A stretch of DNA of 64,000 nucleotides from Zygnema circumcarinatum SAG 698-1b (taxonomy: Eukaryota; Plantae; Zygnematophyceae). Each line of letters begins with the position of its first letter. Within the stretch, counting starts at the first letter, position 1. The stretch is from positions 3,348,001 through 3,412,000 of the forward strand of contig CM074808.1 of NCBI GenBank assembly GCA_037447605.1, in the 5' to 3' direction. Positions 7,731 through 43,047 of the stretch are shown piece by piece. A program made the position numbers and the translations under genes. Under the pieces are notes generated by a model. It was not told the DNA's origin. It searched no databases and was given only the letters and a program-made list of their open reading frames with translations.

Positions 7731-10666
7731 GTAACGCTTTTTTTAGCGGGTCCGTTCATGGTCGTTTTCAGTAATTTGAAGCAGAGTTAAGGGCATTTTT
7801 ATTTCATTTTCAATTTTAGTTCCTATTTCAGTTTTTGTTTTTGTGGCTAAAACTCAAACCTTTGGAGGTTCTGATTTGGAATTAAGTTTTAGTGAAGAGG
7901 TTTCTAGACTATGATGGGTTCCAATAAGGTGCTATTTGGAGTAATTCTTGATGGATGGAAATAGAGATGGAGAGCTTTGGATGGAGCTTTACAACTTTTT
8001 ATCGACAACGCATTTCCGTCGCCTTACAGCGGTGTCTTGCTTCCACGATCCTTCGACGTGCCGCAGTTGTTGGGACCCGTCCCGGTGGTCTTCCGCCCCT
8101 TCCCGCGCGTACTGCGCCCCACATTGGCGACCTTCGCGGCTGCTTCTAGTGCCGTGTTGTTGCGCCTAGAAGTTGATTTCCGTTTCCAAGCTTTCTCTCT
8201 GTCCCTCTGTCCGTTGTGACCGCTTCTTTTGGTTCCTTATGTCGATTTTCTCCTTGTACATTTGATGGCCTTGCCATCGTGAGTTCAATCAAACATCTTT
8301 TCTCTTTCTCTTTGGATGGGGTCTGCAAAGATTTGATGCAATTGGGTCTTAGAATGAGTAAGTAAATATATACGCTGTGATTTCCAAATGCAGAAGTGTT
8401 CTGATTCATTGGTAAAGAACCCAATCAATAATACTCGAAGAGTTTGCGCCAATTTCTAAAGCCGTGTTGTTAAGCCAACAAGTAGAGTTCATGTACAGAT
8501 GGCGACATCGCCATCGTGAGTGCAATGCCAATTCATTTTACGCTTTATTAACCAAAAAAAGGGCTTTTTAGGGCTGTTAAGGTATTTAAAGTTAAACCCT
8601 TAAGATAATCTCTTTAAGTGTCCCCTAAAAAATCTATTTACGACGTTTAAGGGATATCCCTCGTCTGAGGCGGCCTGGAGATGCGGGACTCGAATGCCGT
8701 ACGGTACGGTACCCAAATTCAAATGAAACCTGGCCCGCCAATCAGCTGTCATGTCACATTATTTTGAGCAGGGCTGGGTGTCTATGTCATCAGTTGGCTG
8801 CACAGTTACGATATTCCTCATTTCACTGAACTGCTTACAGACCGGGCTGACTGAGAACACCACATGGAACAGCCAGCCAGCCAGGGAGCGTACCTCTGTG
8901 TACCTTTGTCATCTACTGAAGGGCATTCGATCTTGTGAGCCCTAGAGGCGTAAGTCCTACGAATGGTTGCCATTTCATACATTGCAATCGGAAACACCAC
9001 ACCTGTAGACACCTAGTAGAAGTTTGTTGAGATTTTCAGAAGAACCAACAGTAATGTGAGATTCGTGTTCAATTTCACCAATAAGCTTGCAATTCTAGAG
9101 GCTTAAAAAATCCTTAATTCAATCTGTCGACATCCTGAACCCTCGGAATTCTGAAACCTTTTGAATCAGAAAGCCCTAACATTCAAAGCCCAAACCCTAA
9201 ACGCAAACAGTCTCTGGTTCAGTATGCGACAGACCGTACACCACCTCGATTCATTCAGATCGTACTGTCTCGTATCGGGAAGGAGGGGAGCCAGAGTTAC
9301 CGCTAACTTCACAACCATCTGCGTATCCAGGCTGCGAAGGTTTTGTGAAAAGGGCAGGTTCACAACGGTAGATTGTTATAGCAAGGTGTTCTAGCAAAAA
9401 AGGTGAAATGTTCGCTCCCCCCATGTCCCACTATGCGCACGTACTACCGTGTAAGCTCCTCGCCACCCTCACCCCGTAACTCAGATTGCATACGGGTAAG
9501 GGCACAACGACCAACGTCAGAGGCGGAGCTTCACTAGATTTTGATGATGAACCCGCATCAAAGACCACGAAGACAAAATTCAAGATGGACGATAAGCTGT
9601 GCGCATCCATTGTTGCGTAAATCATTCATCGCTCGCAGTCTTAACTTGTCGTTTTCTGGTTCACCAAAATAGATTTCATTTGTCTTCATTGTTCATGAGC
9701 ACAGGATTCAGGCTGAAGATCGTTCCCATTCTGCATTCACTTTCCTGGAAAGAAATCAAAACGAACTTGGGTGCACATTAGCCATGGCTAGGAATTCTAT
9801 CCGGTTTTGGTGACTGCCTTTGGTTGGAGGGCTTTAGTAGTAAACCCTTCGGAGATCATCAACAAGGATAGCCATCGATTGTTAGATTTTGTCTTGGTCT
9901 GACAAGGCCATTCTTGCAATTGCCTCGTTTCTTCATGTTGTTTGTTGTTTTTTCCCGCGGTGCCGTGTCGCCGCGAGCCGGCCGCTGTCGCTGACGCCCT
10001 CGGCCGGCAGCGGCCGCTGTTGACCGCGGCAGGCCCCGCCGGCCAGTGCCCGCCGCCAAGCGGCGCCTTCAGACCGTGCTTCTCCACATTTCCTATTTTT
10101 CATTTTTCCTTTCACGACCGCCGAGGAGAAAGAGCGAGACGACGCGAGACGACGCGAGAAGAGACGAGACAAGGACGATTTGGCATCCATTTTTGGCATC
10201 GCGCGGCGAGAGCGGCCACATGCCGACAACGACAAAATGTGGAACCCACCCCACCGACCTATGCATAGCCCTTGCGCGATCCGTTCCTGCCGCGCGGCTC
10301 CAGATTCCCCTATGCGACAAGATTGACCTTGCCAGGCGGCCCAAGACACGTGGCCGTACGACCCAGGAGGACTGCCCCCCTTCGCCGCGCCTTCCTGCCG
10401 GCCCGGCGCCGCTTGCACCGTACGGCACCGCCAGTCAACGACGTCAACGATGGTCGCCTCCGTACGGCGCCACGAGTCAACGCGGTCTCCCCCGCGGCCT
10501 CGCGGAAGGCGGCGGCGGCGGCGGCACACGGCGCGGAGGGGAGCAGCGCGCGCATACAAAGGAGGCGGCGGCCGCAGACGCAGACAGACAGGCAGCGCGC
10601 CCTCCCCCTCCGCCTCCTCCTGCACGCCTCGCCTCTCCTCTCCAAGCAGGCACGCGCGCGGAGGCG

Positions 10667-12101
10667 ATGGGGACCTCGAGGGGGAACGTCCTCTTCAATG
10701 TGCTCGTGGTGGCCTTGTCCCTTGCTGCTGGCCACGTGGCGGATGGCCGCCAATTGAGGAACCTCTTGGCTTCCTTCACGCCGACCTTCACAGAGTGTCC
10801 GAGCAGCCCCGTGGAGTACTGCGACTTCTTCTTCGATGGCTACGAGACTTCGATTCCTGTTATTAGGTAGGCGGCCGGCCCATGGCAGCGGAAAGGAGCC
10901 AGGCAGCCAGGGTTTAGCCAATCAAGCTCAAAATAAAAATATCATACTTGTATGGTTTATATTCTTCATCCTGATGGTGGGAATGAGCTGTTCCATGCAG
11001 CCTGGATGGGCAACCCGACACGGCGGTCGGCCCCGCCGTGATGGACTCCAAAAACGGAGAGAGCGTTGAGGTGGACAGTTCCGGCAACGCCGCCTTCCTC
11101 TGCACGGGGAGGGCAGGGACGAGTGCGGGGAACCAGTTCTATGTAAACGAAGAGAAGGCGCACCTCAAATTCCGCACTTTCAACACGGTGAGCATGAAGC
11201 GCCACCCTGCAATATTGCTGACGTGATGCCAGTGGTATTGTGTTTTAATACGTTGGGCTTTCTAAGAGGGATTTGGTGAAGATTCTGACATGCGACATGA
11301 CCTCGTCATTGGCACATGCAGCCATCAAAGGCCCACTTTGAGAATGCGTGCATGGTGATCCCCCTTACGACTCTACGAGTCACAGTCGACGGCGCTCCCA
11401 TCAACCTCAATTGGGGGGACAACAATCAGCAACAGTACCCTGACTCTCGTCGCTGCCTCGTGTTCACTACCGGCCCTCAAGGCGTCACTGGTGCCGCCTG
11501 CAACTTGACAGATCCATCGCCCCCTCCCTCGCCCCCTCCCTCACCTCCTCCCTCGCCTCCTCCCTCGCCCCCTCCTTCTCCTCCTCCGTCACCCCCTCCC
11601 TCTCCTCCTCCTTTCCCTCCTCCCTCTCCCCCTCCTCCACCTTCCCCTCCACCCCCTCCCCCCCCCTGCATGACCTCGTGCCCAACCACTCCGCTGGAGA
11701 TTTGCGACTTCTACTTTGAAGGCTTTGCCACGGAAGTACCTACGTTCAGCCTTTCCACTCCCAACCAGAGCCGTCTGAGCCCCGGCCTCCGCACAAACAA
11801 GACGGGGTCAGAGGTCGCGGTGGAGGTGGACAGGTCGGGGTCGGCCCTCTTCAGAGAGTGTCCTGCGCCGAGCACGGGGGCGGGGGAGCAGTTCTTCCTC
11901 AGCGGCGAAGACGCGGTCCTGCACGCGCGCACGTTCCAGGCCGCGCCCGGTCTGCCCTTCTTCCTCGCCCGCTGCGTCGCGCTGCCCATCGCGGCGTTCA
12001 GAATCCCATATGGAGCCGGCGGCGCATACAATGTGCCGCCGGATGCCGAGCAGCTCTTCGAGCCGGCGCGGCAGTGCGTCGTGTTCAGAACCACGGCGTA
12101 G
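10667..12101 (+). CDS. Secreted chimeric hydroxyproline-rich glycoprotein, copy A: two homologous Cys-containing domains joined by a (SPPP)n rod
   Basis: Exons 10667-10866, 11001-11187, 11322-12101 (GT-AG, phase-consistent). Signal peptide NVLFNVLVVALSLAAG. (PSPP)n linker about 11515-11667. Internal domain repeat CDFFFDGY/CDFYFEGF. Confidence 0.85.
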
Positions 12102-13316
12102 GGGGCGGAGCCGCGGGCTGGCGGGGGGGCTGGCTCGGATGCGATTCTGGGGGGTCCTGCCTTTTGCTGCTTTGTACATAGTACGTAGGAGCGGGCTGTA
12201 AGGTGTTGGTTTTGTAATTTTGCATTTGGTTTAAGGGCGCGGGTGAATTGTACATGTTCGTCTGGATGGTTCTCCACCAGCTTCATTGATTCAACTTTGA
12301 TTTGAAAAAAGAAAAATGAAAAATGATAATGATCTGGTTGGGCGACAACGTCAACTTCAAATGAGGCTTGCGGTGCAGTGGGGTTCATACGCAGAGTTTA
12401 TTTCTGACATTGTGTCCTTGCAATCGAGGCATTTGTGTCCTTGGCGTAATTTGCGGAGCGCTTGTGAGAACACGTAGCAGCTGAAATCGTCCCAACAAAA
12501 ACCACGAAAAGAGAGAAAAGATAAAAGGTGATAGAGTGACGAATGGTGTAACGAATAAGCAGCTTCAAGTTCCTTGTGATACAAACCTGTTTTGCTGGAG
12601 CTGTTCCTTTCAGATGCTTGGTTGAGGGTTGTTCTTCGCCTCTCATAGAGGGGATGTGCTTGCAAAATGTACCATACATGGAGGTACAATAGCAGCTGGC
12701 TATGAACCAAGTATGAAGTCAACAAATCCTGCTAGCCTTATATTCCAGAGCTGGATCCGCTTGTCCCGCCGTGCCCATGGGACTTCCTTTGAGCGTTGTT
12801 GTGAAGGGCGCACAAAATTTCAAGTTTACTTCGCGACTCGGTCAACGTTCATAGGATGGTCGACTAACACGGCGCATGGTGACCAAGATTGTGATGTGGA
12901 TCCGATGAATGAATTGGATGCCAACAAATGTTCTTATTTTTTTTTTTTTTTTCTTAAAAAACATTGAACCATTCGTTCAGTCGCACTCCATGGCCCTTTT
13001 GTGAAAATAGAAATAAACATTTTGAAATGAGCTTGAAGCTCCGGGGAGATGTAAGAATTCGCCGCGAAGGCCGTCGGGTACAAACGGGGTTTTGGCGCAC
13101 CGTCCTCGTCCAAGACCTCCGTTTCAGAGACCGGTGCGGGGCCAGCGCTTGCAGCCGCTTACTGCTTGCAGGAGGAAGGGAATCCATGAGGGAGGCATGC
13201 TGAGCGTTTGCTGACGCAAGGCGAGGATGATTATGCATTTGCAGGAGGGAAACTGATCGTATTGACCTACTGTGGTTGGTGCCGATTTGACATCGTCAGT
13301 ATTTCTGTCAGCAAAC

Positions 13317-13616
13317 ATGGACTTCGACATGGACGATCTCCTGAGTTCTCAGCGACAGCAAGTAAATACTTAGTCAGCTGCACAAAAAACGAGCGCAAAA
13401 GGAAAATCTGCGGCAGACTATGCTGATTTTGGTGAGGCAACTCCTCGAACGGCTCCAGTAAAGCAATTGTAGATCAAGCTTGACAATCTCTGGTGACTGA
13501 AAATGGACTATCAGTTTAAGGAAGAGTCAGTAAGATATTTAGATTCTCATTTAATCTGAATAGTTTTTTCATCATTTTCTTAACAAGTTCACCTTGGCTT
13601 ACATTGCAGACGACGA
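13317..13616 (+). pseudogene. Truncated copy of exon 1, intron 1 and the start of exon 2 of the At4g18490-like gene; the rest of exon 2 lies at 9497-9600
   Basis: ATGGACTTCGACATGGACGAT at 13317 matches 34414 (minus). Parent codon AAG has become TAG at 13371-13373. Sequence breaks off 6-7 nt into exon 2. Confidence 0.85.
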
Positions 13617-13652
13617 AAGAAAGAAAGAAAGAAAGAAAGAAAGCGAAAGAAA
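13614..13652. repeat. (GAAA)n microsatellite at the right junction of the duplication
   Basis: gaaagaaagaaag... lies directly between the end of the duplicated sequence and the second GCATACGG. It is absent from the donor locus. Confidence 0.95.
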
Positions 13653-14231
13653 GCATACGGCAGATGCCAATTCTGTATAAAAACCTCCGTTTCCATTATT
13701 CCAAGTGCGTGGACAGCACCAGAGCCAGCTCTCGTTGAGTTCGCCAATTATTTGACCAGCATGCCGGAATCGGGACCGTTCAGAAAACTTTTGAAGCTTG
13801 CTGCAAAGTGACACATGTCGAGCTAGCCTTTCAACCCCTAGAAGACGATAAATCTCAACAGTTGAAAGTTGAGGACCTAGACAGCCTCTCTAAAATGGAA
13901 GGAATGCAGGTAGAAGAACTTCATAGTGTGAACGTTATAGTAGTCAACCAAGGAAAGTGCCCGTTGAATGGGCTCACCACATCAGTAGATTCAATGCACA
14001 TATTGAAGAGCTTACGAAGACCGATCACTGGACTACAACCGCCTTCACTATTTACACTTCTCGCACAATATCCCCAGCAGGCTTACATGACGGTTGCATG
14101 TGCTGCTCTCTACATCGCATGGGATCATTGAAGTGGACCAGCGAACATTTACATGAGAGACTCTTCTCGTTGAACGTCGCTTCCTCCATACCTGACCACG
14201 TGGAGTTAAATAGCGTAGGTAGATTGGCAGG

Positions 14232-17200
14232 CTACTTAGTAAGGAAGCCCTTCTCGCAAAGATAGTTGATGACGGTCTCAGCCATGATCTCTGGAGCCAC
14301 AAGGGTACCGTCATCCTTGGCAACCTCCATCACCAGCTCCGGGTTTTCTGGTTCTTCATACGGATCATCGATGCCTGCAATTCATGCCCCATAGAAGGTT
14401 ATGCATGCGGAGAGGCCGTGATCACTTCCCATGTAAGTTGGGGCTATTTGGGGACCTAAAGCCCTCATTGTGGTTACAACTGCACACAACACAATGCCAG
14501 TGAACAGGAGATCCCTATAGAAAAGGACCTTCCAGAAATATCCTTAAATTAGTCATCCGAAGTCTCACCGACATCTTCAAGGACAGACGAGGAAGGACAG
14601 TCTCACCAATTTCTGACATACTGGTGCCAAGTTGTGACGTAATTATGTCAAGTTATTTCACGTTGCTAACTATTAACCACGACCTTCCCTTGTTGACTTC
14701 CTCCTGAGTGATGCATCCACAATCACATCCATAAAAACGACACGAGAGTAGTACTGGTCTCCTCCATTTCTCGACACGACTGAAGCACCAAAGCCCTTAC
14801 CATGTTCTACGACATCATACCCCGCCCATGCCCTCAAAATCGACCCAAACTTAGTCAGAATTTCCCCTCTACAGCAGTACGCCCCCAGGATGGCCTATCT
14901 CTCTATACAGAAAAATATACGGATTTCCCCCCCAGTAACTTCATCCCGTCTCACAATAATGGGTACGGAGAGTACAAATTGCTGTGCGGTCCTCCCCCTG
15001 ATTTGCACCCCTCTAACATCAAGACGGATATTTGCCAGTATCTTCCCACCGGTACTGCCATCCGTACTGCTGTATTTATCCAACATGTGAAACGTACCAG
15101 TGAAGCATTTAATCTTTCCTGCGCGGGCGAGTTTATACAGCCCCTTCGGATCACGTGCCTCGCAGACTGCCAGCGGGATTTTCATGTACACTTCAATAAA
15201 GTCTCCTTTTGGCAATAGATCCCTTGCCAACTGCCTATCCCGACTGCTCCACAGACGAGAAAAGCACGTCAGAGTGCGTCACCGTCAAAACTGCAGACTG
15301 ATGCAAGATGAGAACATCTAGTGCTAACAAAAGGCTAACGACTTACGCAAAAAATCACCATACAGGATAAGGACTCCTCTGTGATTGACAGTGACTTGCA
15401 GCCTACAAATAGGTGAGACTGCATTTTATAATGTATATGCTACACTTAGCCTGCAAACTCAACCCCGAAGCAGAAGTTAACCAACACCATGACACTGGAC
15501 CAGCCTTAAAACTAGCCGCGACTAAGATTAAAACAAATGAATGTATGAATGCTATAAAGGTTCAACATCGTTACATTCAAGCAACTATGCTCAGGGGAGG
15601 CAGCATATCTACCAACCAATATGATTCTATTATTCTATTCAGATAGAAACTGAAGTGGAACATGCATATCAGTCTTTAAACTTGCAGCACTTCCCAGGTC
15701 AACGGAAGGGGCGGCCGAAAGTGCTTAGCTGGTAGAAACAACGGAGTCTACGCATTTGATCAAAGCATAACCTTTGAAAGCATTTGGTATGCCAAGTATC
15801 AGCATACCTATATGGAGAAATGAAGCTGACCATAGTTATCAAATTTGCTTCTGCAAAAAGCTTTGCCACTTCGCCAACCCTTCGAATATTCTCCTCACGA
15901 TCCTGTGGGCTGTTATCCACGGCAACATCATTTTAGTAACGAGGCATAGGTAGGGCATACCACATGAAACGCTACATATCCAGAGTGTCAGTCCCTTATA
16001 CAAGCAGAGATATACAGCACCCGAGTGTCAGTTCAGGTTTCGAATCCAAACAGTCGTTGCTGCCTTAATAGGAGAGATCAGTTCCGTCATTGACACAAAT
16101 TTTAGTCAACGTCAGCTCAACTGTTTTCTAACAACTGTTAAAATCATTTCCACAGACAATCCAAATTGTTCCTCAACAGCAGCTAGAGGCAGAACTGCCA
16201 GTCGAGCACCCACGGCCTTTCATCATCCGTCAGTAAAGGCGATGAGCTCTTCCGTATGACTTTGCGAACGCTTGTCCAAGGAACTCCTTCACTTAAAAAA
16301 TCAAAAGCAACTTGCTATGCTAATTAGACGCAACACTCTAATTCGAGAAATATATTAGGAGAAAACCTAAGGGCTATGATAGAAGTAATCGATATGCATG
16401 TTTCCAGAAATAAATTGCTTAGTTACTAATAGATGTTCCTAGTGAAGGCTAAGTTCCATTGTACGTGATTCACTATATAAGTTACATACTTCAAGCCTTT
16501 CTTTTATGGCAATCAATGACTCCCACAACAGGCACACTTAAGGCATGGTCGAATACAGTCAATAAAGGATTGGAGTCCAGTGTGCATCATCCAGAACGGC
16601 AACTGACTCCACAGGATGCCAAAACCTTACCAAGTTATAATTATTTTCGTCACTTGCAAACCCCCAAAGGAAAGGTAAATGTAACTAGAAACGACAAAAT
16701 TTCTCAACAGTGTTACTGAACTACAAACAAACAGCTACTCTGTTTACTTGAATGTGAACCTTTTGAACTTTGATCCACCTGCATCTATGACGTTTAAGGA
16801 AGCAATAAGTTATGTATAAAGCAATTCGTTGAACTTAAAAGTCTGCTCAGTGACCCACAAGAAATCCAGCTCTCATCAATAGTAGTAGTTTCATCATCAG
16901 CTTTCATCACCTGAATCCCAGGTTTTTGTTCAGACCATGTCGAACATTGTCGCCATCGAGTACAAAGGCCATTTTTCCCAAGTTCGTGAGGGCATGATCC
17001 AATGTATAAGCCAGTGTACTCTTTCCTGATCCGCTTAAACCCGTCAGCCAGATGACGCATCCCCTCTGATTCATCAGTCTTTGCCTGCACCCGCTTCAGA
17101 GAGACGCAGCCACCACATTGTTTTTAGAACATAGATACATAAATTATCAAGCTTATTAACATGACAAAGTTTAGAGTTTTGCAGCTAACTAATGAATACA

Positions 17201-18970
17201 GGGAGCTGCAGATCTGCTAGTGGCAATGACTTCAGAATATGTGCATAATGAGAAGTGGGGGAGAAGTAAACTGGTTTTTAAAAGGCTTTTTGATTGCAAC
17301 TCAAACCCACTTTAAATAGCATTTAAAAATTCATCACTTGCTGTAAGTCTTATTGCAAGATTAAGTGAACAAGAAAGAGCCCATGCAGGGATAAGCATTG
17401 TCAAAATTCCGGGCATGTGAGGAGCTAGAGCATATTTTAGCAGCCTGAGCTATAACTCGCCAATTTCCCTATGAGAATGAATAGCTTAAACTGATTTGCG
17501 AGTTCCCAAATAAGAGAAGCAAAACGCAGTCTAGACTTCACCATACACATCACAGCGTCACACAGCAAAGGCTTGTAATGCTACATAACTACAAGGCGAC
17601 AAATGGCATGCCTCGCACAACCTCGACCAAAGATTGAACTCTAGCAGGAGCAGAATCGCGTGTCAGATGCTGGAGACGTTACCTTCACTGCGACTCTAAA
17701 GGCAGGCAACAGTTTTAATCTACAAACGACTGAGTCTCGAAATATAAAGCAAGGCATGAACTGCCTGTAGATTTCAGTCTCACAAGCACAGTGAATTCTG
17801 ATGTAGCTCCTTAAACAAGCAACAAGTCTTGATTTTCAAAGCACATTGCCGTAGCATCGAATCGGATAGTCTCCTACAGCCGTAGTCCTTAAGAGATCAA
17901 GGAGCAAAAGAAGTGAAATTTTCACTTTGGATTGGCAGATCGAGACAAGATCTTGCAATGCAGGTCGCAATTCAGGTAAGACATCTTTCCCAAGTAAACA
18001 ACGCCAGCTTTACAGTCAGTGCTCGAATTGCAGGAATACTCTCGTTTCCACATCCTCTGGAGGTGATGCCCAATTACAAAGAACACAGCTGTTCAAACTG
18101 AGATGTTTGTTCACGAGCCGACTCAGCCTAGTTCGACCTAGATAACCTAAAAAATCATCGAGCCGAGGATTCAAAGGAAAAAAAACGGAAATATAGGCAT
18201 CTGTAAGCTTTCAGGCAATTCATTCTCAAAGCTCACCTGTCTTCTTTGCAGACTTTTGAGTCATGCCATTTAATGTTTGTCGCTCTTCCAACATCGTAGA
18301 CGCTGGATTCTAACACTGCGCTAGTTGTACATCGCGCTGTGTTCTCCGGAACCACAGCGCCGTTTTCAGCCATGGAGACTGAGCAGTAAGGGCCGCCTGT
18401 TCTCCTCGATCTTGATGGAAAAGACAGAGCAGGCGAATGCAGCTGCCGATCGCCAATCTTACCTGCTACAAAAAACTCTTTCGCTAAAGAGACTACAGAT
18501 TCGCCTTCCAACATGCCAAACACTCGCCCACCCTGCAAACCTTGCAACATGGCTGCAAGATCTCACTTCAGACACGCCAAGTGAAACGATCAAGGCCGAA
18601 AAAGGCTTCAGACAGGCCTTGCTTTACTTGCAACGTCTTCAAATACGTGCTGGAGGCGCAGCCATGCAGGGACAGCAAGCGCCTTCTTGAAGCCCAGTGG
18701 ACCTCCAGGAGCAGAGCAGAGCCGTTTCCTGCAAGGGACTATCTCTGCCTCAATTTGAACCTGCCAACATCGGGAGGGAGGGCGGTGCCCAGTGACAGGA
18801 CGCGAAAAACAATATTTCATCCTGCCCTTGGTCTGAAAGAGACTTTTTCCTGCCGTCAAATATTTATTTCCAGAGGCGGGCAGACGATATGGCCCATTTG
18901 TGCCCATCATGTATATTGGCGTCAGCTGTTCGTCAGGAGGGTGGAAGTTTTTGGAGCGTGCGATGAACAT
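14232..18970 (-). CDS. APK: Adenylyl-sulfate (APS) kinase with N-terminal transit-peptide-like extension
   Basis: Exons 18970-18629, 18554-18237, 17084-16911, 15909-15808, 15243-15098, 14374-14232. Motifs [23 protein letters not shown] (P-loop), [74 protein letters not shown]. The first exon is less certain. Confidence 0.95.
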
Positions 18971-28566: not shown

Positions 28567-31500
28567 TCATTCTTCCGACAAGTTTTCCACAAAAATCCTC
28601 TCAATTGCGCTTTCCAGTTTCTGCATCTGGCAGCCCCTCAGGAGTCGCCAGGCCATGGCCAGACATTTTTGGCAACACAGAACGTCAGAGGTCTGAAAGG
28701 GTTCCACTGACAAGGATGACAGACACCAACAGACAAAGGATCAAAGTTGAAAAGATATGAGCATAGAACGGAGTAGTGTTCATTCAGATTGTCGCAGCGT
28801 CCGGGTGAGGAGGGTCTGCGTACCTTAGCTTCCACCATGGGATTGTCCAGCATTCGCAATAAGTTATTGGTCGTGATGGCTCTAATCAGCAGCTCTTGCG
28901 CTTCTTCGTTCTGCCTCTTGATTTCGTCATAAATCTGTTCAAGTAGCACACGAGTATGCGAAGTTAAAGGCAGTACCCTACTTGCATCACTTTACGTCGT
29001 TCGAAAGCAGTGTGAACCGGGAAGTCAAATAATGAAGAGAGATGCACCCGCCAGTGACATTATACTTCAATCCACGCTTACCTCCTTCAACGCACGCTTC
29101 GAGTCAATCCCTGCCCGTTGATGCTGGTAAGCACGCTCAACAATTGAAGCTTCTTTATTGGTGGTTATCTTGAGCGACTTATTCAGACATTCAGCGCCAG
29201 GATTGGATATGCAGAGTTCCTTATCACCACGCCCAACCTGAAAAAAAGCTAGTTTGAGACCCCCTTGTTCAGTATCTTCGAATTTAGATGTCTTGACGAG
29301 GTGAATTGTCTTGATCTTGACGGGTAAACATAATAATATGAATGCGTCAATCCTGTATACCAAGGCGGAGGTTCAATCACGATCCAACCTCTCGACTGCA
29401 TAAAAATTCATGCACACGAGAATTCATGCATGGTTCCTTCCTGTGAGAGTAAAGCGGCGAATGTTGTACCCACATTCAATCGTATAATGACAAGCAGTAC
29501 CCACAAGCGCTGAGAGGGCCAAATCTGGAGTTGTGGGTTGTTTAGGGACGACGACACACCCTTGTCGTCAGAGCTGCTGTAATTCGCTTCGTCTGCCCGA
29601 GACCTTGAAGCAGTGAGTCGTCTTGCTTCATGTTGGCAGGAAGCTTCGCAAAAGCATTTCTTCCTTTGCAATTTTCTTGTTCAGGCCTGCACCGTCCAGG
29701 AAAGAAAACGTTTCGAAAGTGGATGCCAGGCGAAAAACAATTAAGATGGACTCTTTCGTCAAGTGTCTCCTGATGAGAAGCAATCAGAAAGGACCATTGA
29801 TGGGGCAATTATTCAAGAAATAGTTTCGTTGATGGTGTTGTATGCCATAAGCTAAAGATTGCAGTGTGTATTGCATGCAACCAGGGGCGAAAACAACGAG
29901 AGAAACTATACTGGCCCACACATGCTGATTTCTAAAGGACGGCAAGACGAAACTAGTTGTCTGCGCGGTTATGTGCTAGATGCATGGGATATGCCTTAGG
30001 CTTATAGGCTTTGCCTCGACATTATATTGCCCTTCATGATCTGCCTTGCAGTGTCATACCTTCGGCTGGTTGATAGAGCAACAACGTGATCTACCTTGAA
30101 GCACATTGGCAGTGCCATACCTTCGGCTGGTTGATAGAGTAACAACAGTTGAAGTTGATTCACTCCCCTTCCACCATACGACGTCCTTGTTTGTCGGCTG
30201 TTAGGGCCAAACAAGCCAAAAACCTTATGTTTTACTATCAGCTCTTAATTGATGTATTCGATCCAAGAACAAAATCCTCTTGAGTTGAGGCTACGAAAAC
30301 GTTTTCATGTATTCAGCACACTGACACATTAGTGTAAATTGTATTTAGTCATAGAGTATCAAGCCCCTGATTTTCAGCGGAAATTACATACCATAGCCTG
30401 TAGCTTGGTTGACAGATCAGACCGGGGAACGGAAGCTCGTTCCTTTAAGGCATTCACTGACAATGGTGCACTCGCTAGGTTGACATTTGAAAGCATTCTC
30501 AACCTTTGGTTGGCGTTGGTTGGCTCCTGCTTACACCAGAAATGACCAAAACAAACCAGCCATAGTTTTATATTGAAAGTGTACAGCATTCCTCTTCTGT
30601 CAATTGCAAGCTTATACTGCAGAGGCGAACGAACAAACTTGAAAGAGTTAATTAAAAAGGCTGGCAAAGTCCTTCTCACAAGTGGTAGTTTCCTCTTTAA
30701 TGTCTGGAGTGCCCCTGTTGGTTTCGAACCCTTCAGAGTCTGCAGGGCTTCCTTCCTCCCGTCCATCGTCGTATCTTGGACGGACTTGGAGACGTCACAA
30801 GCAGTTGCAAAAACTTGTAGTTTTTTGTGGCTTGTCTCTAGAACTGGATTCCTGCTGGGCCACCAACTGGAAAAGGTTAACACTCATTTGTGTAGCTTTT
30901 TGATTTCCTCTTTAAGGTTCAAGCCATAACTCACCTCGTCAGGCGCTCAGTTGATGCTGCTATATCCTTTACAGCAGCAGCTTGCTGCTCATGGCCTCCA
31001 GGCTGCTTAGAAGATAGGGGCAGTGGCTCCATTTGTGTGGCTCTGTCCTTTCCTGCGGCAGCTTGCTGTTCATGGCATGCAGGCTGCTTAGAAGACAGAG
31101 GCAGCTGCTCCATTGGTGCAAGTTCCTCCACTCCTGTAGCGGCTTCCTGTTCATGGCCTGCGGCCTGCTTGGTAGGCAGCGGCAGTGACACGATTGATGC
31201 TGCTTTTTCCTTTCTCGTAGCAGCTCGCTGTTCATGGCTTGCAGGCTGCTTAGACGACAGATGTAATAGCTCGATGGCTGGTGCTTTCTCCTTTCCTGCG
31301 GCAGCTTGCTGTTCATGTCCTGCAGGCTGATTGGAAGACGGAGGCCGTGGCGTGATTAGTGCTGGTTTTCCTTTTGCGGTAGCAGCTGGTTGATCGTGGC
31401 TTGCAGGCTGCTTGAAAGACAGGGCCTGTAACTCCGTTGGTGCCGTCTTCTCCTTTGAAGCAGCAGCTTGCTGTTCACGTCCTCTGGGCGGCTTGGAGGA

Positions 31501-34414
31501 CAGAGCAGTGCTAATGAATAAACTCGTCGTTGTTGCAGGCTGCTTTGTGGAAGTCACCTGAGTAAGGTCCTGCTGAGTTTTTGCCGCATGCAGTGTCCGA
31601 TTTTTTACAAGAGTTGAGCAGTCTTCAACACCGCGACTCTGTTGTGGACGTGATGTTAACTTCGCTAGCAGAGGTGAAGCAAGAGGTTTTGACTTCTCAT
31701 TGCTCTGAAGGAGGCCAGAACATTGATTTGGTCCATTTTGTGATGTACCATCTACGATTCTGCAAAGCAGGTTAAGACCGTAAGAATTCGGCTGTGAAAC
31801 TTTGAAGGGCTTACTGTTTTGTTCGCACTTCCCGCATTCATGATTTCTGACTCCGGTTATCTCCCAGTTTGAACCATACTAAGAGTAGCTGGAAAAAGTT
31901 CTCACCTTCCAGGCTTGACTGAAGTTTGCCTTGACTGAGGATCGTGAGGCTTGGCGGGAAAGGGTGATTTGATGACTGCCGCTGTTGCTTGCCTTATCCC
32001 ATTTGCTGCAGGTTTCGTCGACAGTGCCTGCTCATTTGGAGCAATAGGCTGACATGCAGTGACATTGCGTTCGTGTGCCAGCCGTAACTCCTCTGGGTTC
32101 TTTTCCGTTTCTAAGGCAACGCGGGCAGGATAACACGAACTGTTCTCCCTGGAAAACAATGAACAGACCGTTTGATTGATGAACCTTGATTTTCGTGAAA
32201 GGACACAGACTGAGCTACGTTCTACTGGTACAGAAAAGAGCTGTCCAGTAGGCTTCTGAGAGATTCACCTTAACCAGAAAAAGCATCCTGACGTAGACAT
32301 ACCAGTGTCAACAATACAATACAATACAATACAAAAAGGCGGCATATATGTGATTCCGGCTTCGTTTCAAGATACAATCATGCAGAATTTGACTCTGCAT
32401 ATGTAACATTATGAAAGGCGGTCAGAATTTTTCCACCTCTGTTTGATGTCCAACTTATCAGAGGCTTTATCCGCAACGGTTTCGTCAGATTGCGCAGTTG
32501 CTTTGCCTTGCATCCCCTCCGCTTGTACCGTTGGAATAGGTGTCAATTCCTTGGTAGTTTCGTTGAACCCATTGTCACCTACTTGATGGTAGAGTGCGAG
32601 CGAAGCATCCTTGTACTTCTGAAGATCGGCTGATGAATCAAATGCTGCAGGATCGTTTTCTTGCTGACAAGCTCGATTCAACCCAACAGGCCCACCTTCA
32701 GCCTCACCTGCCTTCTCTGTCTCTGGCGGAGGATCTCTGGGCTCTGCTTGAAGTGCTTGCTTTGCAGGGGCACTTGCATCTCCTTTAGTGGCTCCGCTTT
32801 CAACCAATTCATTAGTCTTCATTTTATCTGACCAGCTGAGTGCTTTGAGGAAGCTATCTTGAAGGTCAGCCTCCGATGACTTGCTTGTTTCAATGCTAGT
32901 TTTGACATGGGCAGAATATATTCGAATTTCAGGCTCTTTCGAGCCCACAGCCGCTCCTGCGCCTTCGTCTATTTCTTGCATGTGTCCATTCGCTGCATGA
33001 TTGGATCCAGAAACCGTAGTCTTGTTTGAGGTATCCACTTTACAGTTACGAGAGTTTTCGAGCCCTGTGCCAGGTTCTTTGCTCATATCTTCGTGCTCAT
33101 AATCTTCCGATGATCTGCATTGTCCAGTTACTTCCTGTTGTGGATTCGTGTATTCTTCCCCGTGATTTCTGCCAGAAAGCTCACAACTTTCTCTTGTTAC
33201 ACCATTCGTCTTCTGATTGCTCTTGATCGACGCCTCATCGTTCGGCCGTGAAGGTCCCTTTAGCGGTTCCCTTGAAGTGATTTCGAAATCACTGCATAAA
33301 ACCTCCGACATCAAAGCATATAATTATCAGTTATTGTCCCCCAACAGCCTAGTTCTATCCAGCTCATGGCGTAATCGGGAAAAAAAACAAGGCGTGCTTT
33401 ACTGTCTGCCTGTACCAGCCACCAGTTATTCTTGAAAACAGCTACTCCTTCTCTCAATCTATTTACCAATGCAGACTGGTGATTCAGCAGTCGAAGCACT
33501 TATCCATGGACGTGAGTTCACCATTTGCTTGTGAAATCATTGAAACCAAGAGAACCTAAAGACACGGATTTGGAAGATTTAGCTGGGGAACTCCTCGCAG
33601 AAACAGTCTTCTTTTCGTCTCCCCTATGACTAGCTGGTTCTGGAGAATCCAATCCACTGATATTTATGTCAAATTTATCAAGTCCTCCTTCAAAATCAAA
33701 GTCCATCCTGTTCGCAGCCAACAAGTCGGTGTCAGCACTGCTATACTAAACCACGATTAAGGATTGGCTTCAGTTGTATTGAACGAATCTCTGCAACAGG
33801 ACAGCTATGTCCCTGGAACTTTCTAAGCGAAATAAGAGCCAGGAGTTCTTTCCAGCAAAGTGAATGAAGAATGGTAACAATTTTCGGCCTGATTCCTGTG
33901 CTCATGAACAATGCAGAAGAATGAAATATATTTGGTGAACCAGAAAACGTCAAGTTGAGATTGCGAACGATGAATAATTTACACAACAATGGATGCGTAC
34001 AGCTTATCGTCCATCTTGAATTTCGTCTTCGTGGTCGTTGATGCCGGTTCATCATCAAAATCTAGTGAAGCTCCGCCTCTGACGTTGGTCGGTTTCCAGC
34101 CCTTAAGAAAATCGTCATCTGCAATGTAAGCTTTGCAAGGTGGACTTGTTAAGAAAATGGGGAAAAAACTATTCAGATTAGACGAGAATCTAAATCTTTT
34201 ACTGACTCTTCCTTAACTGATAGTCCATTTTCAGTCACCAGAGATTGTCAAGCTTGATCTACAATTGCTTAACTGGAGCCGTTCGAGGAGTTGCCTCACC
34301 AAAATCAGCGTAGTCTGCCGCAGATTTCCCTTTTGCGCTCGTTTTTTGTGCAGCTGACTTAGTATTTACTTGCTGTCGCTGAGAACTCAGGAGATCGTCC
34401 ATGTCGAAGTCCAT
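28567..34414 (-). CDS. At4g18490-like uncharacterised protein (large, low-complexity middle, conserved N- and C-termini)
   Basis: Exons include 34414-34300, 34118-34001, 33737-33522, 33291-32437, 32148-31906, 31759-30935, 30866-30680, about 30526-30423, 30199-30121, about 29236-29081, about 28937-28827 and a last exon ending 28567. N-term DDFLKGWK..MDFDFEGGLDKFD and C-term IYDEIKRQNEEAQELLIRAITTNNLLRMLDNPMVEAK resemble, from memory, the plant At4g18490 family. Some middle exons are uncertain. Confidence 0.7.
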
Positions 34415-35689
34415 GTTTGCTGACAGAAATACTGACGATGTCAAATCGGCACCAACCACAGTAGGTCAATACGATCAGTCTCCCTCCCGCAAATGCATAA
34501 TCATCCTCGCCTTGCGTGAGCAAACGCTCAGCATGCCTCTCCCATGGATTCCCTTCCTCCTGCAAGCAGTAGGCGGCTGCAAGCGCTGGCCCCGCACCAG
34601 TCTCTGAAACGGTCTTGGACGAGGACGGTGCGCCAAAACCCCGTTTGTACCCGACGGCCTTCGCGGCGACGGCTAATTTTGAGAATTCTTACATCGACGC
34701 AGGAGCTTCAAGCTCATTTCAAAATGTTTATTTCTATTTTCACAAAAGGGCCATGGAAGCGGGTGAGCGGATAGTTCAATGTTATTTAAGAAATAAAAAA
34801 TAAGAATTATTATTTGTTGGCATCCCAATTCGTTCATCGGATGGATCCACATCACAATCTTGGTCACCATGCGCCGTGTTAGTCAACCATTCTATGGCCG
34901 TTGACCAAGTCCTGAAGTAAGCTTGAAATTTGTGCGGCCCTTCACGTTCATTTGACTACAACGCTCAAAGGACGTCCCATGCGCGCGTCGGGACAAGCGG
35001 ATTCCGCTCTGGAATGTAAGGCTAGCAGGATTTGTTGACCTTGTACCTGGTTCATAGCCAGCTGCTATTGTACCTCCATGCATGGTAGATTGTGCAAGCA
35101 CATCCCCTCAATGCGAGGCGATGACCAACCCTCAACCAAGCATCTGAAAGGAACAGCTCCAGCAAAACAGGTTTGTACCACAAGGAACTAGAAGCTGCTT
35201 ATTCGTTACACCATTCGTCTCTCTATCACCTTTTATCTTTTCTCCCTTTTCGTGGTTTTCTTTGGGACGATTTCAACTGCTTCGTGTTTCACACGACTTT
35301 TTGCGATCGAATTCGCAAAACGAGCGCTCGGCAAATTACGCCAATTATACAAATGTCTCGATTGCAAAGACACAATGTCAGAAATAAACTCTGCGTATGA
35401 ACCCCCCTGCACCGGAAGCCTCATTTGAAGCTGACGTTGTCGCCCAACCAGATCATGCCAGATATCATTTTTCTTTTTCCTTTTTTGAAATCAAAGTTGA
35501 ATCAATGAAGCTGGTGGAGAACCATCCAGACGAACATGTACAATTCTCCCGCGCCCTTAAACCAAATGCAAAATTACAAAACCAACACCTTACAGCCCGC
35601 TCCTACGTACTATGTACAAAGCAGCAAAAGGCAGGACCCCCAAGAATCGCATCCGAGCCAGCCCCCCCGCCAGCCCGCGGCTCCGCCCC

Positions 35690-37153
35690 CTACGCCGTGG
35701 TTCTGAACACGACGCACTGCCGCGCCGGCTCGAAGAGCTGCTCGGCATCCGGCGGCACATTGTATGCGCCGCCGGCTCCATATGGGATTCTGAACGCCGC
35801 GATGGGCAGCGCGACGCAGCGGGCGAGGAAGAAGGGCAGACCGGGCGCGGCCTGGAACGTGCGCGCGTGCAGGACCGCGTCTTCGCCGCTGAGGAAGAAC
35901 TGCTCCCCCGCCCCCGTGCTCGGCGCAGGACACTCTCTGAAGAGGGCCGACCCCGACCTGTCCACCTCCACCGCGACCTCTGACCCCGTCTTGTTTGTGC
36001 GGAGGCCGGGGCTCAGACGGCTCTGGTTGGGAGTGGAAAGGCTGAACGTAGGTACTTCCGTGGCAAAGCCTTCAAAGTAGAAGTCGCAAATCTCCAGCGG
36101 AGTGGTTGGGCACGAGGACATGCAGGGGGGGGGAGGGGGTGGAGGGGAAGGTGGAGGAGGGGGAGAGGGAGGAGGGAAAGGAGGAGGAGAGGGAGGGGGG
36201 GACGGAGGAGGAGAAGGAGGGGGCGAGGGAGGAGGTGAGGGAGGGGGCGAGGGAGGGGGAGATAGTGGCGGAGGGGGTGAGGGAGGCGGCGATGGATCTG
36301 TCAAGTTGCAGGCGGCACCAGTGACGCCTTGAGGGCCGGTAGTGAACACGAGGCAGCGACGAGCGTCAGGATACTGTTTCTGATTGTTGTCCTCCCAATT
36401 GAGGTTGATGGGAGTGCCGTCGACTGTGACTCGTAGAGCCGTAAGGGGGATCACCATGCACGCATTCTCAAAGTGGGCCTTTGACGGCTGCATGTGCCAA
36501 TGACGAGGTCATGTCGCATGTCAGAATCTTCACCAAATGAACGTTTCTTCACTCTTAGAAAGCCCAACGTATTAAAACACAATACCACTGGCATGAAGTC
36601 AGCAACATTGCAGGATGGCGCTTCATGCTCACCGTGTTGAAAGTGCGGAATTTGAGGTGCGCCTGCTCTTCGTTGACATAGAACTGGTTCCCCGCACTCG
36701 TCCCCACCTTCTTCGTGCAGAGGAAGGCGGCGTTGCCGGAATTGTCCACCTCAACGCTCTCTCCGTTTGTGGAGTCCATCACGGCGGGGCCAACCGCCGT
36801 GTCGGGTTGCCCATCCAGGCTGCATGGAACAGCTCATTCCCACCATCAGGATGAAGAATATAAACCATACAAGTATGATATTTATCTTTTGAGCTCGATT
36901 GGCTAAACCCTGGCTGCCTGGCTCCTTTCCGCTGCCATGGCCCGGCCGCCTACCTAATAACAGGAATCGAAGTCTCGTAGCCATCGAAGAAGAAGTCGCA
37001 GTACTCCTTGGGGCTGCTTGGACACTCTGTGAAGGCCGGCGTGAAGGAAGCCAAGAGGTTCCTCAATTGGCGGCCATCCGCCACGTGGCCAGCAGCAAGG
37101 GACAAGGCCACCACGAGCACATTGAAGAGGACGTTCCCCCTCGAGGTCCCCAT
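35690..37153 (-). CDS. Secreted chimeric hydroxyproline-rich glycoprotein, copy B (parent locus)
   Basis: Exons 37153-36954, 36819-36633, 36487-35690. Intact paralogue of 10667-12101 with a slightly longer (SPPP)n rod. Confidence 0.85.
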
Positions 37154-37488
37154 CGCCTCCGCGCGCGTGCCTGCTTGGAGAGGAGAGGCGAGGCGTGCAG
37201 GAGGAGGCGGAGGGGGAGGGCGCGCTGCCTGTCTGTCTGCGTCTGCGGCCGCCGCCTCCTTTGTATGCGCGCGCTGCTCCCCTCCGCGCCGTGTGCCGCC
37301 GCCGCCGCCGCCGCCGCCTTCCGCGAGGCCGCGGGAGGGACCGCGTTGACTCGTGGCGCCGTACGGAGGCGACTATCGTTGACGTCGTTGACTGTGGTGC
37401 CGTACGGCACGAGCGGCGACGGGCCGGTGGCAGGAAGGCGCGGCGAAGGGGGGCAGTCCGCTTGGACCGTACGGCCGCGTGTCCTGGG

Positions 37489-38895
37489 TAGGGATGGCCC
37501 GAGTTATAAATTCCGAATACATTATATACTTTACAACGGGTTTAAAAGTAGTAATATATTACAAACTAAAACATTTTATTACATATATTATACCCACTCG
37601 TTTTGAACAATTAACGACCGTACGAGCGTACTCGTACGGTCGTACGGTCGCACCATACCAAAATTAGGTCGTTTTGTCGTTGGCGTTGCGAAAAATGCGT
37701 CCGTTGTAGCACAAGATAAGTGGGGTTAAAAGGAGATTGCTGAGCTAGTTGCAGGTGCTGTACGGCCACTCGAGCGTCCGTGCTGAAACTGATGAAGGGT
37801 TGGGTTGGTGCCGTGGGTCTGCCTGCAGCATAGAGCCAGGATCCGGGGGATTCAGAGGTACGCGCAGCGGAAGACGTAGGGATCCTGAAGATGTTCCCAC
37901 CGGCGGCTGGACCCGATGCGCAAAGAGCCCTTCCTTGGGGGCTCTCCTCCCCTGTCCTCTCCTCGGCTAGTCTCTTAGCTAGGCTTCTAGTTATCATTGG
38001 TCATTGGGAGGAATGTAAGGCAGGATAGAACAAGATGGTAGCTTGGCATAGTGACAGCAAAGGGAAAACAGGACTCAACTTAGATAAAGGTTGTATTTTG
38101 GAAAGTCACCCCAGCCAGCGGTTGGCTGGGGATTGTCATTACAATGAAAGTATCTTCTCACTGAAATCTTTGTCTGGCTGGGCTGAATGGGACGTCTAAA
38201 TGCTATCAGCAAGAAGACTCTTTCTCTCTCTCTCTCTCTATCTATGGCATGGAACTCTCTCTCTCTCACACTTAGCATCTGTTGCTGGAACTGAAGAGGA
38301 GGAAGAGAAGAACAAGACAACAAACCACACAGCAAATACAAATACTAAGCCCAGCACTAAAAGACAAACAAGCATCACTGACATCCCATCTACTTAACAC
38401 TGACAATAGATCTTGAGCCTTCGCAGTGACAGTCCCTGATTGGCCAACTGCCCACTGAGTGGCCTGACTGACTGCGTGGAGCCTTCGGATAGGTCAACTG
38501 ATGACAATCGGCGGCATTTTGCGGCTCGTCCGAGTGCGCCTAGCTGGATGGTGTGCTGTTCCGTGGGCCGCCAACACATGGCGCCGCCTTCTCGCATTTT
38601 CCGTCGGCAACTCCTGGATTATGCCGGTCCGTGACACTGAATGTGAATATGTCAAGTACCACTGAACGGACGCGAATCCGTCGAGCGCAGCTCCGTTACG
38701 CTACACCGTCTGGTTCACTCTGTCTGCTCGTGCTCGACCGTACACCCGTACCGCATAGTACCGTACAATCGTACAACCATACGACCGTCCGACCGTACAT
38801 GTTGTAAAGGCGTTGTAAAGTAATGTATATCAGCCGTTATCTAATCGTCACAGTTGTATAATATAATATATATTATATAGTCGTAATTAATCCAT
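37489..38895. mobile_element. Composite transposon remnant absent from copy A: hAT-like left end, GTAC-rich subterminal blocks and a nested LTR fragment
   Basis: Starts TAGGGATGGC (resembles hAT TIRs such as TAGGGATG). CGTAC clusters at 37616-37650 and 38739-38798. No matching right TIR found. In copy A it is replaced by 60 unrelated bp (10280-10339). Confidence 0.55.
37706..38636 (-). mobile_element. Truncated LTR retrotransposon (one 503-bp LTR at 38134-38636 plus start of a gag-like ORF)
   Basis: Segment bounded by TGTCA...TGACA. The minus-strand ORF from 37997 begins MITRSLAKR, an MxTRS start typical of Ty3/gypsy gag. No pol and no second LTR. Confidence 0.55.
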
Positions 38896-40472
38896 TCGCG
38901 CAAGGGCTATGCATAGGTCGGTGGGGTGGGGTCGCCTCGGTCCCACATTTTGTCGCTGTCGGGATGTGGCCCCTCTCGCCGCGCGATGCCAATAATGGAT
39001 GCCAAATCATCTTCGTCTCGTCTCGCGTCGTCTCGCAGTCGTAAAAAGAGAAATGAAAAATAGGAAATGTGGCGGAGCATGGTCTGAAGGTACCGCTTGG
39101 GGGCGGGAATAGGCCGGCGGGGCCAGCTGCCGCTTCCGGCCGAGGGCGTCTGCGGCAGCGGCCGGCTCGCGGCGAGACGGCACCGCGGGGCATGAAGAAA
39201 CGAGGCAATTGCGAAAATGGCCTTGTTGGACCAAGACAAGACTTGAAAATCGACGGCTCTCCTTGTTGATCAATCTCCGAAGTGTTTACTACTAAAGCCC
39301 TCCAACCAAAGGCAGTCACCAAAACCGGCTAGAATTCCTAGCCATGGGCAATGTGCAGCCATGCGTGACCCGTATCTGATACGGAATCATGGATCTGATT
39401 CGTACCAGTCCAAGGAAGTTCGTCACTAGAAGACAAAAAGTAATTCGATTGTTGGTACGACGCCGTACTTCCATGATTACCCCAAATCTATCCCTCAGTT
39501 TCATTGGAACTTCACATTCCGTAAAACAGGATACTGCATGTTCCCTGTCGGCCCATTCCCCGCCTCCCGTTGGCGGCCGTACGGACGCCGTTCCGCCGGT
39601 TTGTGCCGCCGGTTGGGCCCCTTCCAGGCTTGTGCCGGGCGGCGGAGCCTCCCAGACTGACACCTGTCAGCCGTCGAGGCGACGTCCGCTCGTCGTGGGA
39701 CACGTGGCGGCCGCTGCTGCCCCCGGCCGGCCGGGAAGGCCTGCCAGCTGGCGCGGCGGGATCGGCAGCGGCCGGAAAGACCGGCTGCAACTAGCGCGCT
39801 CTTTATGGGGCGAGGCGATGGCCAACCACGTTCTGCCACGTGTTCATGTGTCGGACGTGTCTAGTTGTGATTGGTCCAGCTAGACCATACGGTCAGTGGC
39901 GGCCCGCCCTACACGGCCGCCTCGATCTCGTCCGGTCTGTTGAATACGAAGTCGGGACGTCGCGGGACTGCGGAGCCAAAATTCGTTTCCGGTCAGGGCC
40001 GAGGGGCTGACCGGACGGGGAAAACTGCGTACTATATATAGGCATTGATTTTTTGGTGGATTTCCATGATCTCGGGCAGGCAGGGGACCAAAAAAGTAGT
40101 TAATTGTGTGCCAGTTTGCAGGATCAAACCAGCTGGCTGATTCCTGCAGGCAGGGCACGAAGGGCAAGGCCAGCTCAAGCGCTGGCTGGCTCCTGAACAT
40201 GGCTGCTTTGCTTCCAAAGGCTGGATCTGCTGCTGCTCCTGCAGCCAGACTTCGTGCATGTTACTGTTAGCGCTCATAGCATGGCTTTGAAGTTTGAGAG
40301 ATTGAAGTCCGAAGTTTGAAGATTGAAGTTCGAAGGTACCTTTTTCATTTTGCAAGTGAAGTTGGGATAGTTAATTGCAGGCCGTTTCAACGCGAAGGAG
40401 ATTCCGAAAGGAGCATAGGAGTGTGGCGCTGTTGGAGATCACTTGCATGTAGTGTTGCTTGTAGCTGTAGGA

Positions 40473-42554: not shown

Positions 42555-43047
42555 TAACCGCCTGCCCAATCAATGCCACATCTCTGTTACGCCTGCCCCT
42601 TCATATTCATTTTCAATAAGGCCTTATATTCGTCCTGTGCAAGCGCGGTCGCCGCTGTCTATGGCAGACGTGATTGTATTTTTTGTTATAATGGTCCATC
42701 AAAATAATCATGCTATTCTTTGCACATAGATAACGCTAAATGTCTTCAAGAAGAAAAAGTGGCAATTTTGAGTGTTTAGTCGGTTGGCCGGCGTCTGCTT
42801 TATATGCCCAAATTTGTACTGACGGGCTGGGGAGTCAGGGTCAGATATAGGGTCACGCCTAGACTAGCTCAGTTCAATAAGGCCTCTGTGTAAATAAGCA
42901 ATCTAAGATGGTCGAGAGATAGAACGCCGGATTCATGAAAGTTGATTCATCCTTGGTGAGGGTACAACAGTTGCGACTGTAGCTTTATGTAAACAAGTTT
43001 GAACTCATTTGTTAATATGTTCGGCAATGGAAGCTTGCACAGATCGG

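Follow-up and report, generated by a model that had tools for sequence, protein, structure and literature searches.

Dispersed duplication through a circular DNA intermediate has been described for cattle KIT colour-sidedness, a yeast cluster of open reading frames (ORFs), tilapia vasa (PMC3245284), and human segmental duplications (PMC7188851; PMC7450558). Unit-length circular permutation of the copy is the accepted signature of such an intermediate and the criterion by which it was recognized in these three reports; in PMC7188851 the pattern takes the form of an efghij-abcd order and of two parallel lines on a dot plot. Documented DNA-circle duplications amount to a handful of cases, most of them tens to hundreds of kilobases long and several of uncertain polarity. 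Here we describe a candidate from Zygnema circumcarinatum SAG 698-1b, in a stretch of 64,000 nucleotides of contig CM074808.1 (positions 3,348,001 to 3,412,000, hereafter the window), in which positions 9496-13652 (4157 bp) are an inverted, circularly permuted copy of 33841-39361 and hold a second version of a gene for a predicted wall protein. The circular route to duplication is already described, and rare; the Zygnema case adds to it a small size, base-pair resolution, exact 8-bp flanks and an intact gene.

The earlier reports allow the following comparison with duplications attributed to extrachromosomal circular DNA (eccDNA). Common to these and to the Zygnema copy are a permuted order, head-to-tail joining of the outer ends of the source, filler or short indels at the breakpoints only, and the retention of introns and upstream DNA. 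Tilapia vasa likewise kept its introns and upstream DNA and acquired a later insertion in the source (PMC3245284), and a probable later source insertion obscures collinearity in Zygnema too. The Zygnema copy differs in being about 4.1 kb long, against 15-480 kb in yeast, tilapia, human and cattle (PMC3245284; PMC7188851), in being intrachromosomal, inverted and only 20 kb away from its source, and in lying in a plant-lineage (streptophyte) genome. It is flanked by an exact 8-bp repeat, a feature not described for the cases in the available portions of PMC3245284, PMC7188851 and PMC7450558, and it yields an intact extra protein-coding gene, whereas according to PMC7188851 none of its human cases did.

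A second relevant system is the filler DNA found in plants at double-strand breaks and transposon excision sites (Roffler and Wicker, 2015; PMC4423477), together with the gene-movement model cited there. Plant excisions can be patched with foreign filler, "perfect" footprints consisting of two duplication copies occur, and hAT elements produce 8-bp duplications (PMC4423477). Foreign DNA lying in a break between two intact copies of a target duplication (PMC4423477) is common to that system and the Zygnema insert, and hAT-like elements and elements with 8-bp duplications are present in the window. The usual filler is short and collinear, however, whereas the Zygnema insert is 4.1 kb long and circularly permuted.

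Geometry, content and polarity of the copy

Comparison of positions 9000-14200 with the whole window by blastn returned four matches, all of them inverted: 9508-9757 with 34091-33843 (90.8%, segment Z), 9768-10279 with 39361-38896 (79% with gaps, segment X), 10340-12465 with 37488-35320 (95.0%, first part of segment Y), and 12463-13616 with 35293-34112 (90.3%, second part of Y). Beyond these four the same search found no match of comparable length in the window, blastn revealed no paralogue there of the insertion-site flanks, and a self-comparison of the whole window gave no second permuted duplication. Read on its minus strand, the source has the order X, 1.4 kb of extra DNA, Y, Z, while the copy has the order Z-X-Y; X and Y, together with Z, all lie on the same relative strand. 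The distance from the insert to the nearest end of the source is 20.2 kb on the same chromosome. The pieces recovered are exactly those of the Z-X-Y arrangement proposed in a preliminary description of this sequence, and set against the 33.8-39.4 kb locus the copy forms two offset blocks. The duplication structure is therefore confirmed as real.

In the copy, which is described on the plus strand, segment Z occupies 9496-9759; 9497-9759 corresponds to source 34105-33841 with a substitution identity of 0.90, the G at 9496 is unassigned, and the segment comprises the greater part of exon 2 and the initial ~140 nt of intron 2 of a gene adjoining the wall-protein gene in the source (the neighbouring gene). 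The Z/X junction, at which the presumed circle would have been closed, lies at 9760-9767. Segment X (9768-10279) corresponds to source 39361-38896 and represents the distal promoter region of the wall-protein gene. It is followed by 60 nt present in the copy only (10280-10339), which were lost from the source along with one end of what is probably a later transposon. Segment Y (10340-13616) corresponds to source 37488-34112. It contains the wall-protein gene with its proximal promoter, as well as intergenic DNA; its share of the neighbouring gene consists of the promoter, exon 1, intron 1 and 7 nt from the start of exon 2. On the minus strand of the source the segments occupy 38896-39361 (X), 34112-37488 (Y, including the source wall-protein gene) and 33841-34105 (Z).

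The two outer ends of the copy correspond to a single point in the source. Z starts at 9497, the counterpart of source 34105, and Y ends at 13616, the counterpart of source 34112, such that the ends lie 6 nt apart and the insert spans exactly one unit length. The six source bases between them (TTTTCT, 34106-34111, minus strand) have no counterpart in the copy and mark the presumed opening point of the circle, 7 nt into exon 2 and hence 7 nt past the cag acceptor; the preliminary placement of both ends about 6 nt apart within exon 2 thus agrees with the junctions as read here. Conversely, the outer ends of the source, 33841 and 39361, are adjacent in the copy and meet head to tail with a gap of at most 12 nt. 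The preliminary description had joined them through about 12 nt of filler; the joining stands, but the unassigned sequence is better given as 2-12 nt. Together the two sets of ends define a unit-length circular permutation, as that description had proposed.

The same Z-X-Y order with an internal Z/X junction would result if the insert were a unit-length excerpt of a former tandem duplication or rolling-circle concatemer at the source, taken by cutting or copying from one position in a unit to its equivalent in the next, the array having later collapsed to one unit. Such an excerpt would have to land within 6 nt of unit length at random, for which the odds are roughly 0.003 (an estimate from the 4.1-kb unit), and no trace of a second unit is present at the source. 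We consider this origin improbable, but homologous pop-out from a tandem duplicate could also generate the circle of the preferred model while sparing the source.

The polarity of the duplication can be read from the neighbouring gene, whose exons were called from ORFs and splice motifs alone. The source locus carries this gene whole, with ORF exons reaching down to about 28.6 kb, and there the Y/Z boundary falls inside a continuous open exon: the cag acceptor lies at 34121-34119, exon 2 would occupy 34118-33983, and the intron 2 donor (GTAAAT) would begin at 33982. The copy has only the first ~600 bp of the gene, cut 7 nt into exon 2 and with its parts placed at opposite ends of the insert. 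Judged from a gene that is whole at one locus and split and permuted at the other, the direction from the 33.8-39.4 kb donor to the derived copy at 9.5 kb appears clear, as had been suggested.

Substitution identity, calculated over aligned bases only, is 0.901 for Z, 0.903 for X, and 0.90-0.93 for unconstrained or non-coding parts of Y. The similarity of X needs some qualification, since the 79% reported by blastn reflects indels in GC-rich low-complexity DNA and the value at aligned bases is 90%. All segments are thus equally diverged (~10%), which argues for one event rather than two adjacent insertions, and by this measure the duplication is most probably a single old event.

The wall-protein gene is present whole at both loci. 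The copy has exons at 10667-10866, 11001-11187 and 11322-12101 (plus strand) that encode 388 amino acids with the frame intact; the source gene, on the minus strand, has exons at 37153-36954, 36819-36633 and 36487-35690, encodes 394 amino acids and is also intact. All four splice-site contexts are the same in both. The copy includes both 134-nt GT-AG introns and, outside the gene's coding region, 897 bp ahead of the ATG as well as the intergenic DNA leading to the promoter of the neighbouring gene. Retention of introns, promoter and intergenic DNA indicates that copying was DNA-based, in line with the preliminary account, which had also described duplication of an intact gene with its promoter, and the open reading frame and 897 bp of upstream DNA agree. 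A retrocopy was rejected, as both GT-AG introns are kept and the permuted order is not collinear with a mature transcript; a tail of sorts does exist, with 36 nt of (GAAA)n standing beside the target duplication, but no family of elements tailed in this way came to light. A related possibility is that the reverse transcriptase of a long interspersed nuclear element (LINE) copied an unspliced read-through RNA, starting at a 3' end tailed with (GAAA)n and making a template jump that placed Z first. The target duplication, the A-rich microsatellite at the 3' end and the sense orientation of both genes would suit such a mechanism; three introns, the promoter and the intergenic region are nevertheless retained, the order is permuted, the 3' end would lie 7 nt inside an exon, which is no place for polyadenylation, both pieces of RNA would need to come from a single transcript and adjoin each other in it, and the window holds no (GAAA)n-tailed element. 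We regard LINE copying as extremely improbable.

Junctions and the route of insertion

The insert is bracketed by two exact copies of the octamer GCATACGG, the left one (9488-9495, plus strand) touching the first inserted base and the right one at 13653-13660 (plus strand). This octamer occurs just three times in the window when both strands are counted, and in 200,000 random trials on this window, with two boundaries placed 4.1 kb apart, the 8-mer to the left of the first was met again in the 60 nt following the second with a probability of 0.001. The 8-bp direct repeats noted earlier are thus borne out. A stretch of 36 nt of (GAAA)n (13617-13652, plus strand), also reported previously, separates Y from the right octamer. 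The full array spans 13615-13653 and is the only one of its kind in the window, which contains many other microsatellites. Its position inside the octamers dates the tract, or else the seed of it, to the insertion; the tract may represent iterated filler or a microsatellite that grew in place during the ~10% divergence. An origin as hairpin or palindromic nucleotides derived from the lost TTTTCT was worked through by hand and discarded, as it did not reproduce the observed junction.

No microhomology is present at either chromosome-insert junction; the left flank ends in ...ACGG where the source has ...TTCT. The Z/X filler could not be traced to a convincing template. The best candidate is ACGAACTT, 8 nt of the junction that recur at source 39423-39416, 55 nt upstream of X; this recurrence could be templated filler, a small deletion or chance, with which it is compatible.

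A dispersed gene duplication by way of a circular DNA intermediate is the most parsimonious explanation for this locus, and we put the chances of it at about even. A circular intermediate is favored because the geometry is what would be obtained by opening a circle once, and from it we infer not only the circle but also the succession of steps and the kind of break at the target. A copy of source 39361-33841, with the transposon not yet present, would have been closed by end joining into a circle of ~4.1 kb, with no more than 12 nt of filler where Z meets X. A single break 7 nt inside exon 2 of the neighbouring gene would then have opened the circle at the cost of six bases, and the linear molecule would have been ligated without microhomology and in inverted orientation into a chromosomal break in intergenic DNA 20 kb off. 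The target break, bounded by the GCATACGG pair, may have been a cut with an 8-nt stagger whose ends were filled in, or a gap that remained after excision of a transposon with an 8-bp duplication. The octamers may just as well be a footprint of this second kind, from an element that departed before the break was filled; the sequence at the insertion site shows no transposon remnant. The product would be a second complete, promoter-bearing wall-protein gene accompanied by a scrambled 5' fragment of the neighbouring gene. Afterwards the two copies would have diverged by ~10% and undergone gene conversion in patches, the source promoter would have received a hAT-like insertion, and the (GAAA)n tract may have grown.

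A serious rival, which we would nonetheless call unlikely, is repair of a chromosomal break by copying with template switches and no free circle, whether by synthesis-dependent strand annealing (SDSA) or by microhomology-mediated break-induced replication or fork stalling and template switching (MMBIR/FoSTeS). In one version a target end would copy Z from 34105, jump 5.5 kb back to 39361, copy X and Y as far as 34112, and return to the target 8 nt behind its point of departure; in another, both ends of the break would prime at the same point in the source and copy outward, and the products would be joined. Either leaves the source intact by construction. Synthesis that resumes behind its departure point can yield an 8-nt duplication, short unassigned and possibly locally templated nucleotides at Z/X would be in keeping with switching, given that ACGAACTT recurs so close by in the source, and filler copied into transposon excision gaps is documented (PMC4423477). 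In PMC7450558 a replicative interaction was invoked for permuted human duplications. However, copying would have had to stop within 6 nt of its start after 4 kb of synthesis, at a place where no feature is known to bring about such a stop, and microhomology is missing from both chromosome-insert junctions, where priming would be needed. The filler in the rice survey measured 1-123 bp (PMC4423477), far below 4.1 kb. Because the junctions lack microhomology, ligation of a pre-formed double-stranded fragment appears preferable to template priming, and the loss of only six bases at the opening point was counted in favor of such ligation.

Several considerations weigh against the circular intermediate. 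The circle itself was not observed, and the event is old (~10% divergence) and the original circle gone. The source is intact, and a circle would therefore have to derive from a replicated copy, from a transient tandem duplicate that popped out, or from the other chromatid or homologue. Template switching during break repair gives the same arrangement, the case is a single instance, and the (GAAA)n tract and the Z/X filler lack an explanation. The junctions were read directly from the letters of one assembly, and public sequencing runs lend the copy limited support: of the 31-mers sampled from 9300-13800, half or more are present in each of 13 runs from 8 studies, a tally that does not distinguish individual words. 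Independent contigs and empty sites were sought by exact-protein look-ups of ORFs across the junctions and in the flanks, of a 349-amino-acid ORF elsewhere in the window and of the best remote homologue, and by a metagenome scan for the left flank with its octamer; none of these gave a match.

Dependence on one assembly also raises the prospect that the copy is an artefact, created when source-locus reads were joined into a chimera. The copy, however, departs from the source in about 5-10% of its bases and in many indels and is hence a separate sequence, its 31-mers occur in the runs of the 8 studies, and an exact pair of flanking octamers would not be expected from a faulty join. The only run of Ns in the window is at 2340-2349, far from the duplication. 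Misassembly was rejected on the divergence, the 31-mers and the octamers, and we hold it to be very improbable.

Transposons in the window and the origin of the octamers

The 1.4 kb that separate X from Y in the source (37489-38895, plus strand) are absent from the copy and lie 335 bp upstream of the source ATG. They have the character of a non-autonomous hAT-like element: TAGGGATGG, at 37489, is an Ac-like terminus, and both ends carry inverted repeats of the GTACGGTCG type in a subterminal position. The far terminus is missing, and so is a piece of flank of about 60 bp, preserved in the copy as 10280-10339; the two appear to have been deleted together. On these features we read 37489-38895 as a probable hAT-like insertion into the source promoter after duplication. 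If the transposon arrived later, X and Y adjoined each other at the time of copying, in a unit of about 4.1 kb; the X-Y gap recorded for the donor in the preliminary description would accordingly be real but a separate, later insertion. The promoter of the copy is uninterrupted and that of the source has the transposon, so the paralogues may differ in expression.

A second element in the window, a 975-bp foldback at 43030-44020, is flanked by an exact 8-bp repeat, GAAGCTTG, and has inverted termini, CACAGATCGGACCA, that match at 13 of 14 positions; its body consists of 42-bp palindromic tandem units.

The insert itself shares with hAT insertions the 8-bp direct repeat around it, the length of target duplication that serves as a criterion for hAT transposons. 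Terminal inverted repeats are lacking in the insert, where the left end (GTAAGGGCAC...) and the right end (...GCGAAAGAAA) are not complementary. A hAT or other terminal-inverted-repeat transposon was rejected as the identity of the insert, which has neither inverted termini nor subterminal repeats nor a transposase and whose ends are host exon sequence. The role for a hAT transposase put forward in the preliminary description was not upheld, as it drew solely on the length of eight, and the insert has no terminal inverted repeats or transposon ends. There is a further version, in which the 8-bp repeat is a genuine mark of integration and the transposase of the genome's hAT-type elements, or another nuclease cutting with an 8-nt stagger, integrated a promoter-bearing host circle that was not itself a transposon. 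We judge this decidedly improbable; if true, transposase-assisted reinsertion of eccDNA would be a route to whole-gene duplication.

Helitrons have a 5' TC and a 3' CTRR end, insert between A and T, and produce no target duplication. Gene capture by a Helitron was considered for the insert and rejected, since its ends are GTAAGG... and ...GAAAGAAA, it lies between G and G, and an 8-bp duplication is present.

The wall-protein pair and its surroundings

The wall protein is predicted to be secreted, with a signal peptide, a Cys-containing domain, a Ser-Pro3 rod and a second copy of the domain. Neither domain has a match in Pfam. For the C-terminal domain (11679-12098), an exhaustive HMMER search among 1.84 billion representatives gave only 40 distant relatives, with identities of no more than 45% except for one 50% match limited to residues 1-89 of 140; some of these relatives are N-terminal modules fused to GDSL lipase or thioredoxin domains. 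The C-terminal Cys-containing domain thus appears to be an unnamed secreted-protein domain.

Two tracts are identical in copy and source, one of 475 bp (11674-12148, corresponding to 36117-35643) and one of 276 bp (10508-10783, corresponding to 37312-37037). In simulations at 10% divergence the longest identical run had a mean of 60 and a maximum of 139. As the observed runs far exceed this expectation, their length indicates later gene conversion between the inverted copies 20 kb apart. The synonymous divergence (dS) of domain 2 is 0, that domain having been homogenized by conversion, and domain 1 has a dS of 0.045 and a nonsynonymous divergence (dN) of 0.034, with 13 of 194 residues differing and a dN/dS of about 0.76.

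The neighbouring gene had been labeled At4g18490-like, a name that could not be confirmed: Pfam, a search of 5.8 billion proteins and the ESM Atlas gave nothing for its exons, and its 301-amino-acid exon in particular had no match in the protein search or the ESM Atlas. At 30951-31510 (minus strand) the gene contains a coding tandem repeat of about seven units of 81 nt (27 amino acids) with around 70% identity, the units sharing a recurring SSKQPA.HEQQAAA motif. In the stranded promoter and exon 1 of this gene within the copy, a run of 119 bp (13252-13370) is identical to the source, and 13247-13396 is 98.7% identical in surroundings of ~90% identity in non-coding DNA. This identity could be due to gene conversion or to a function that was kept, such as that of a promoter now driving transcription in the direction of the 3' end of an APS-kinase gene.

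The insertion site is intergenic DNA between that gene and a receptor-kinase gene. To the left of the insert lies the 5' end of the receptor-kinase gene, on the minus strand and with a malectin-like start near 7.1 kb. To the right is the APS (adenylyl-sulfate) kinase gene (14898-18550, minus strand), whose exons match Pfam PF01583 and whose 3' end is about 1.2 kb from the insert.

In this Zygnema duplication every junction is legible at the level of the base pair, donor and recipient are unambiguous, and a complete second gene with its promoter is present. The later fate of the pair may likewise be followed at one locus, with gene conversion of one protein domain, divergence of the other, and what we take to be a transposon in one of the two promoters. 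The exact 8-bp flanks also pose a concrete question, namely whether the recipient break arose through a staggered cut or through the excision of a transposon.

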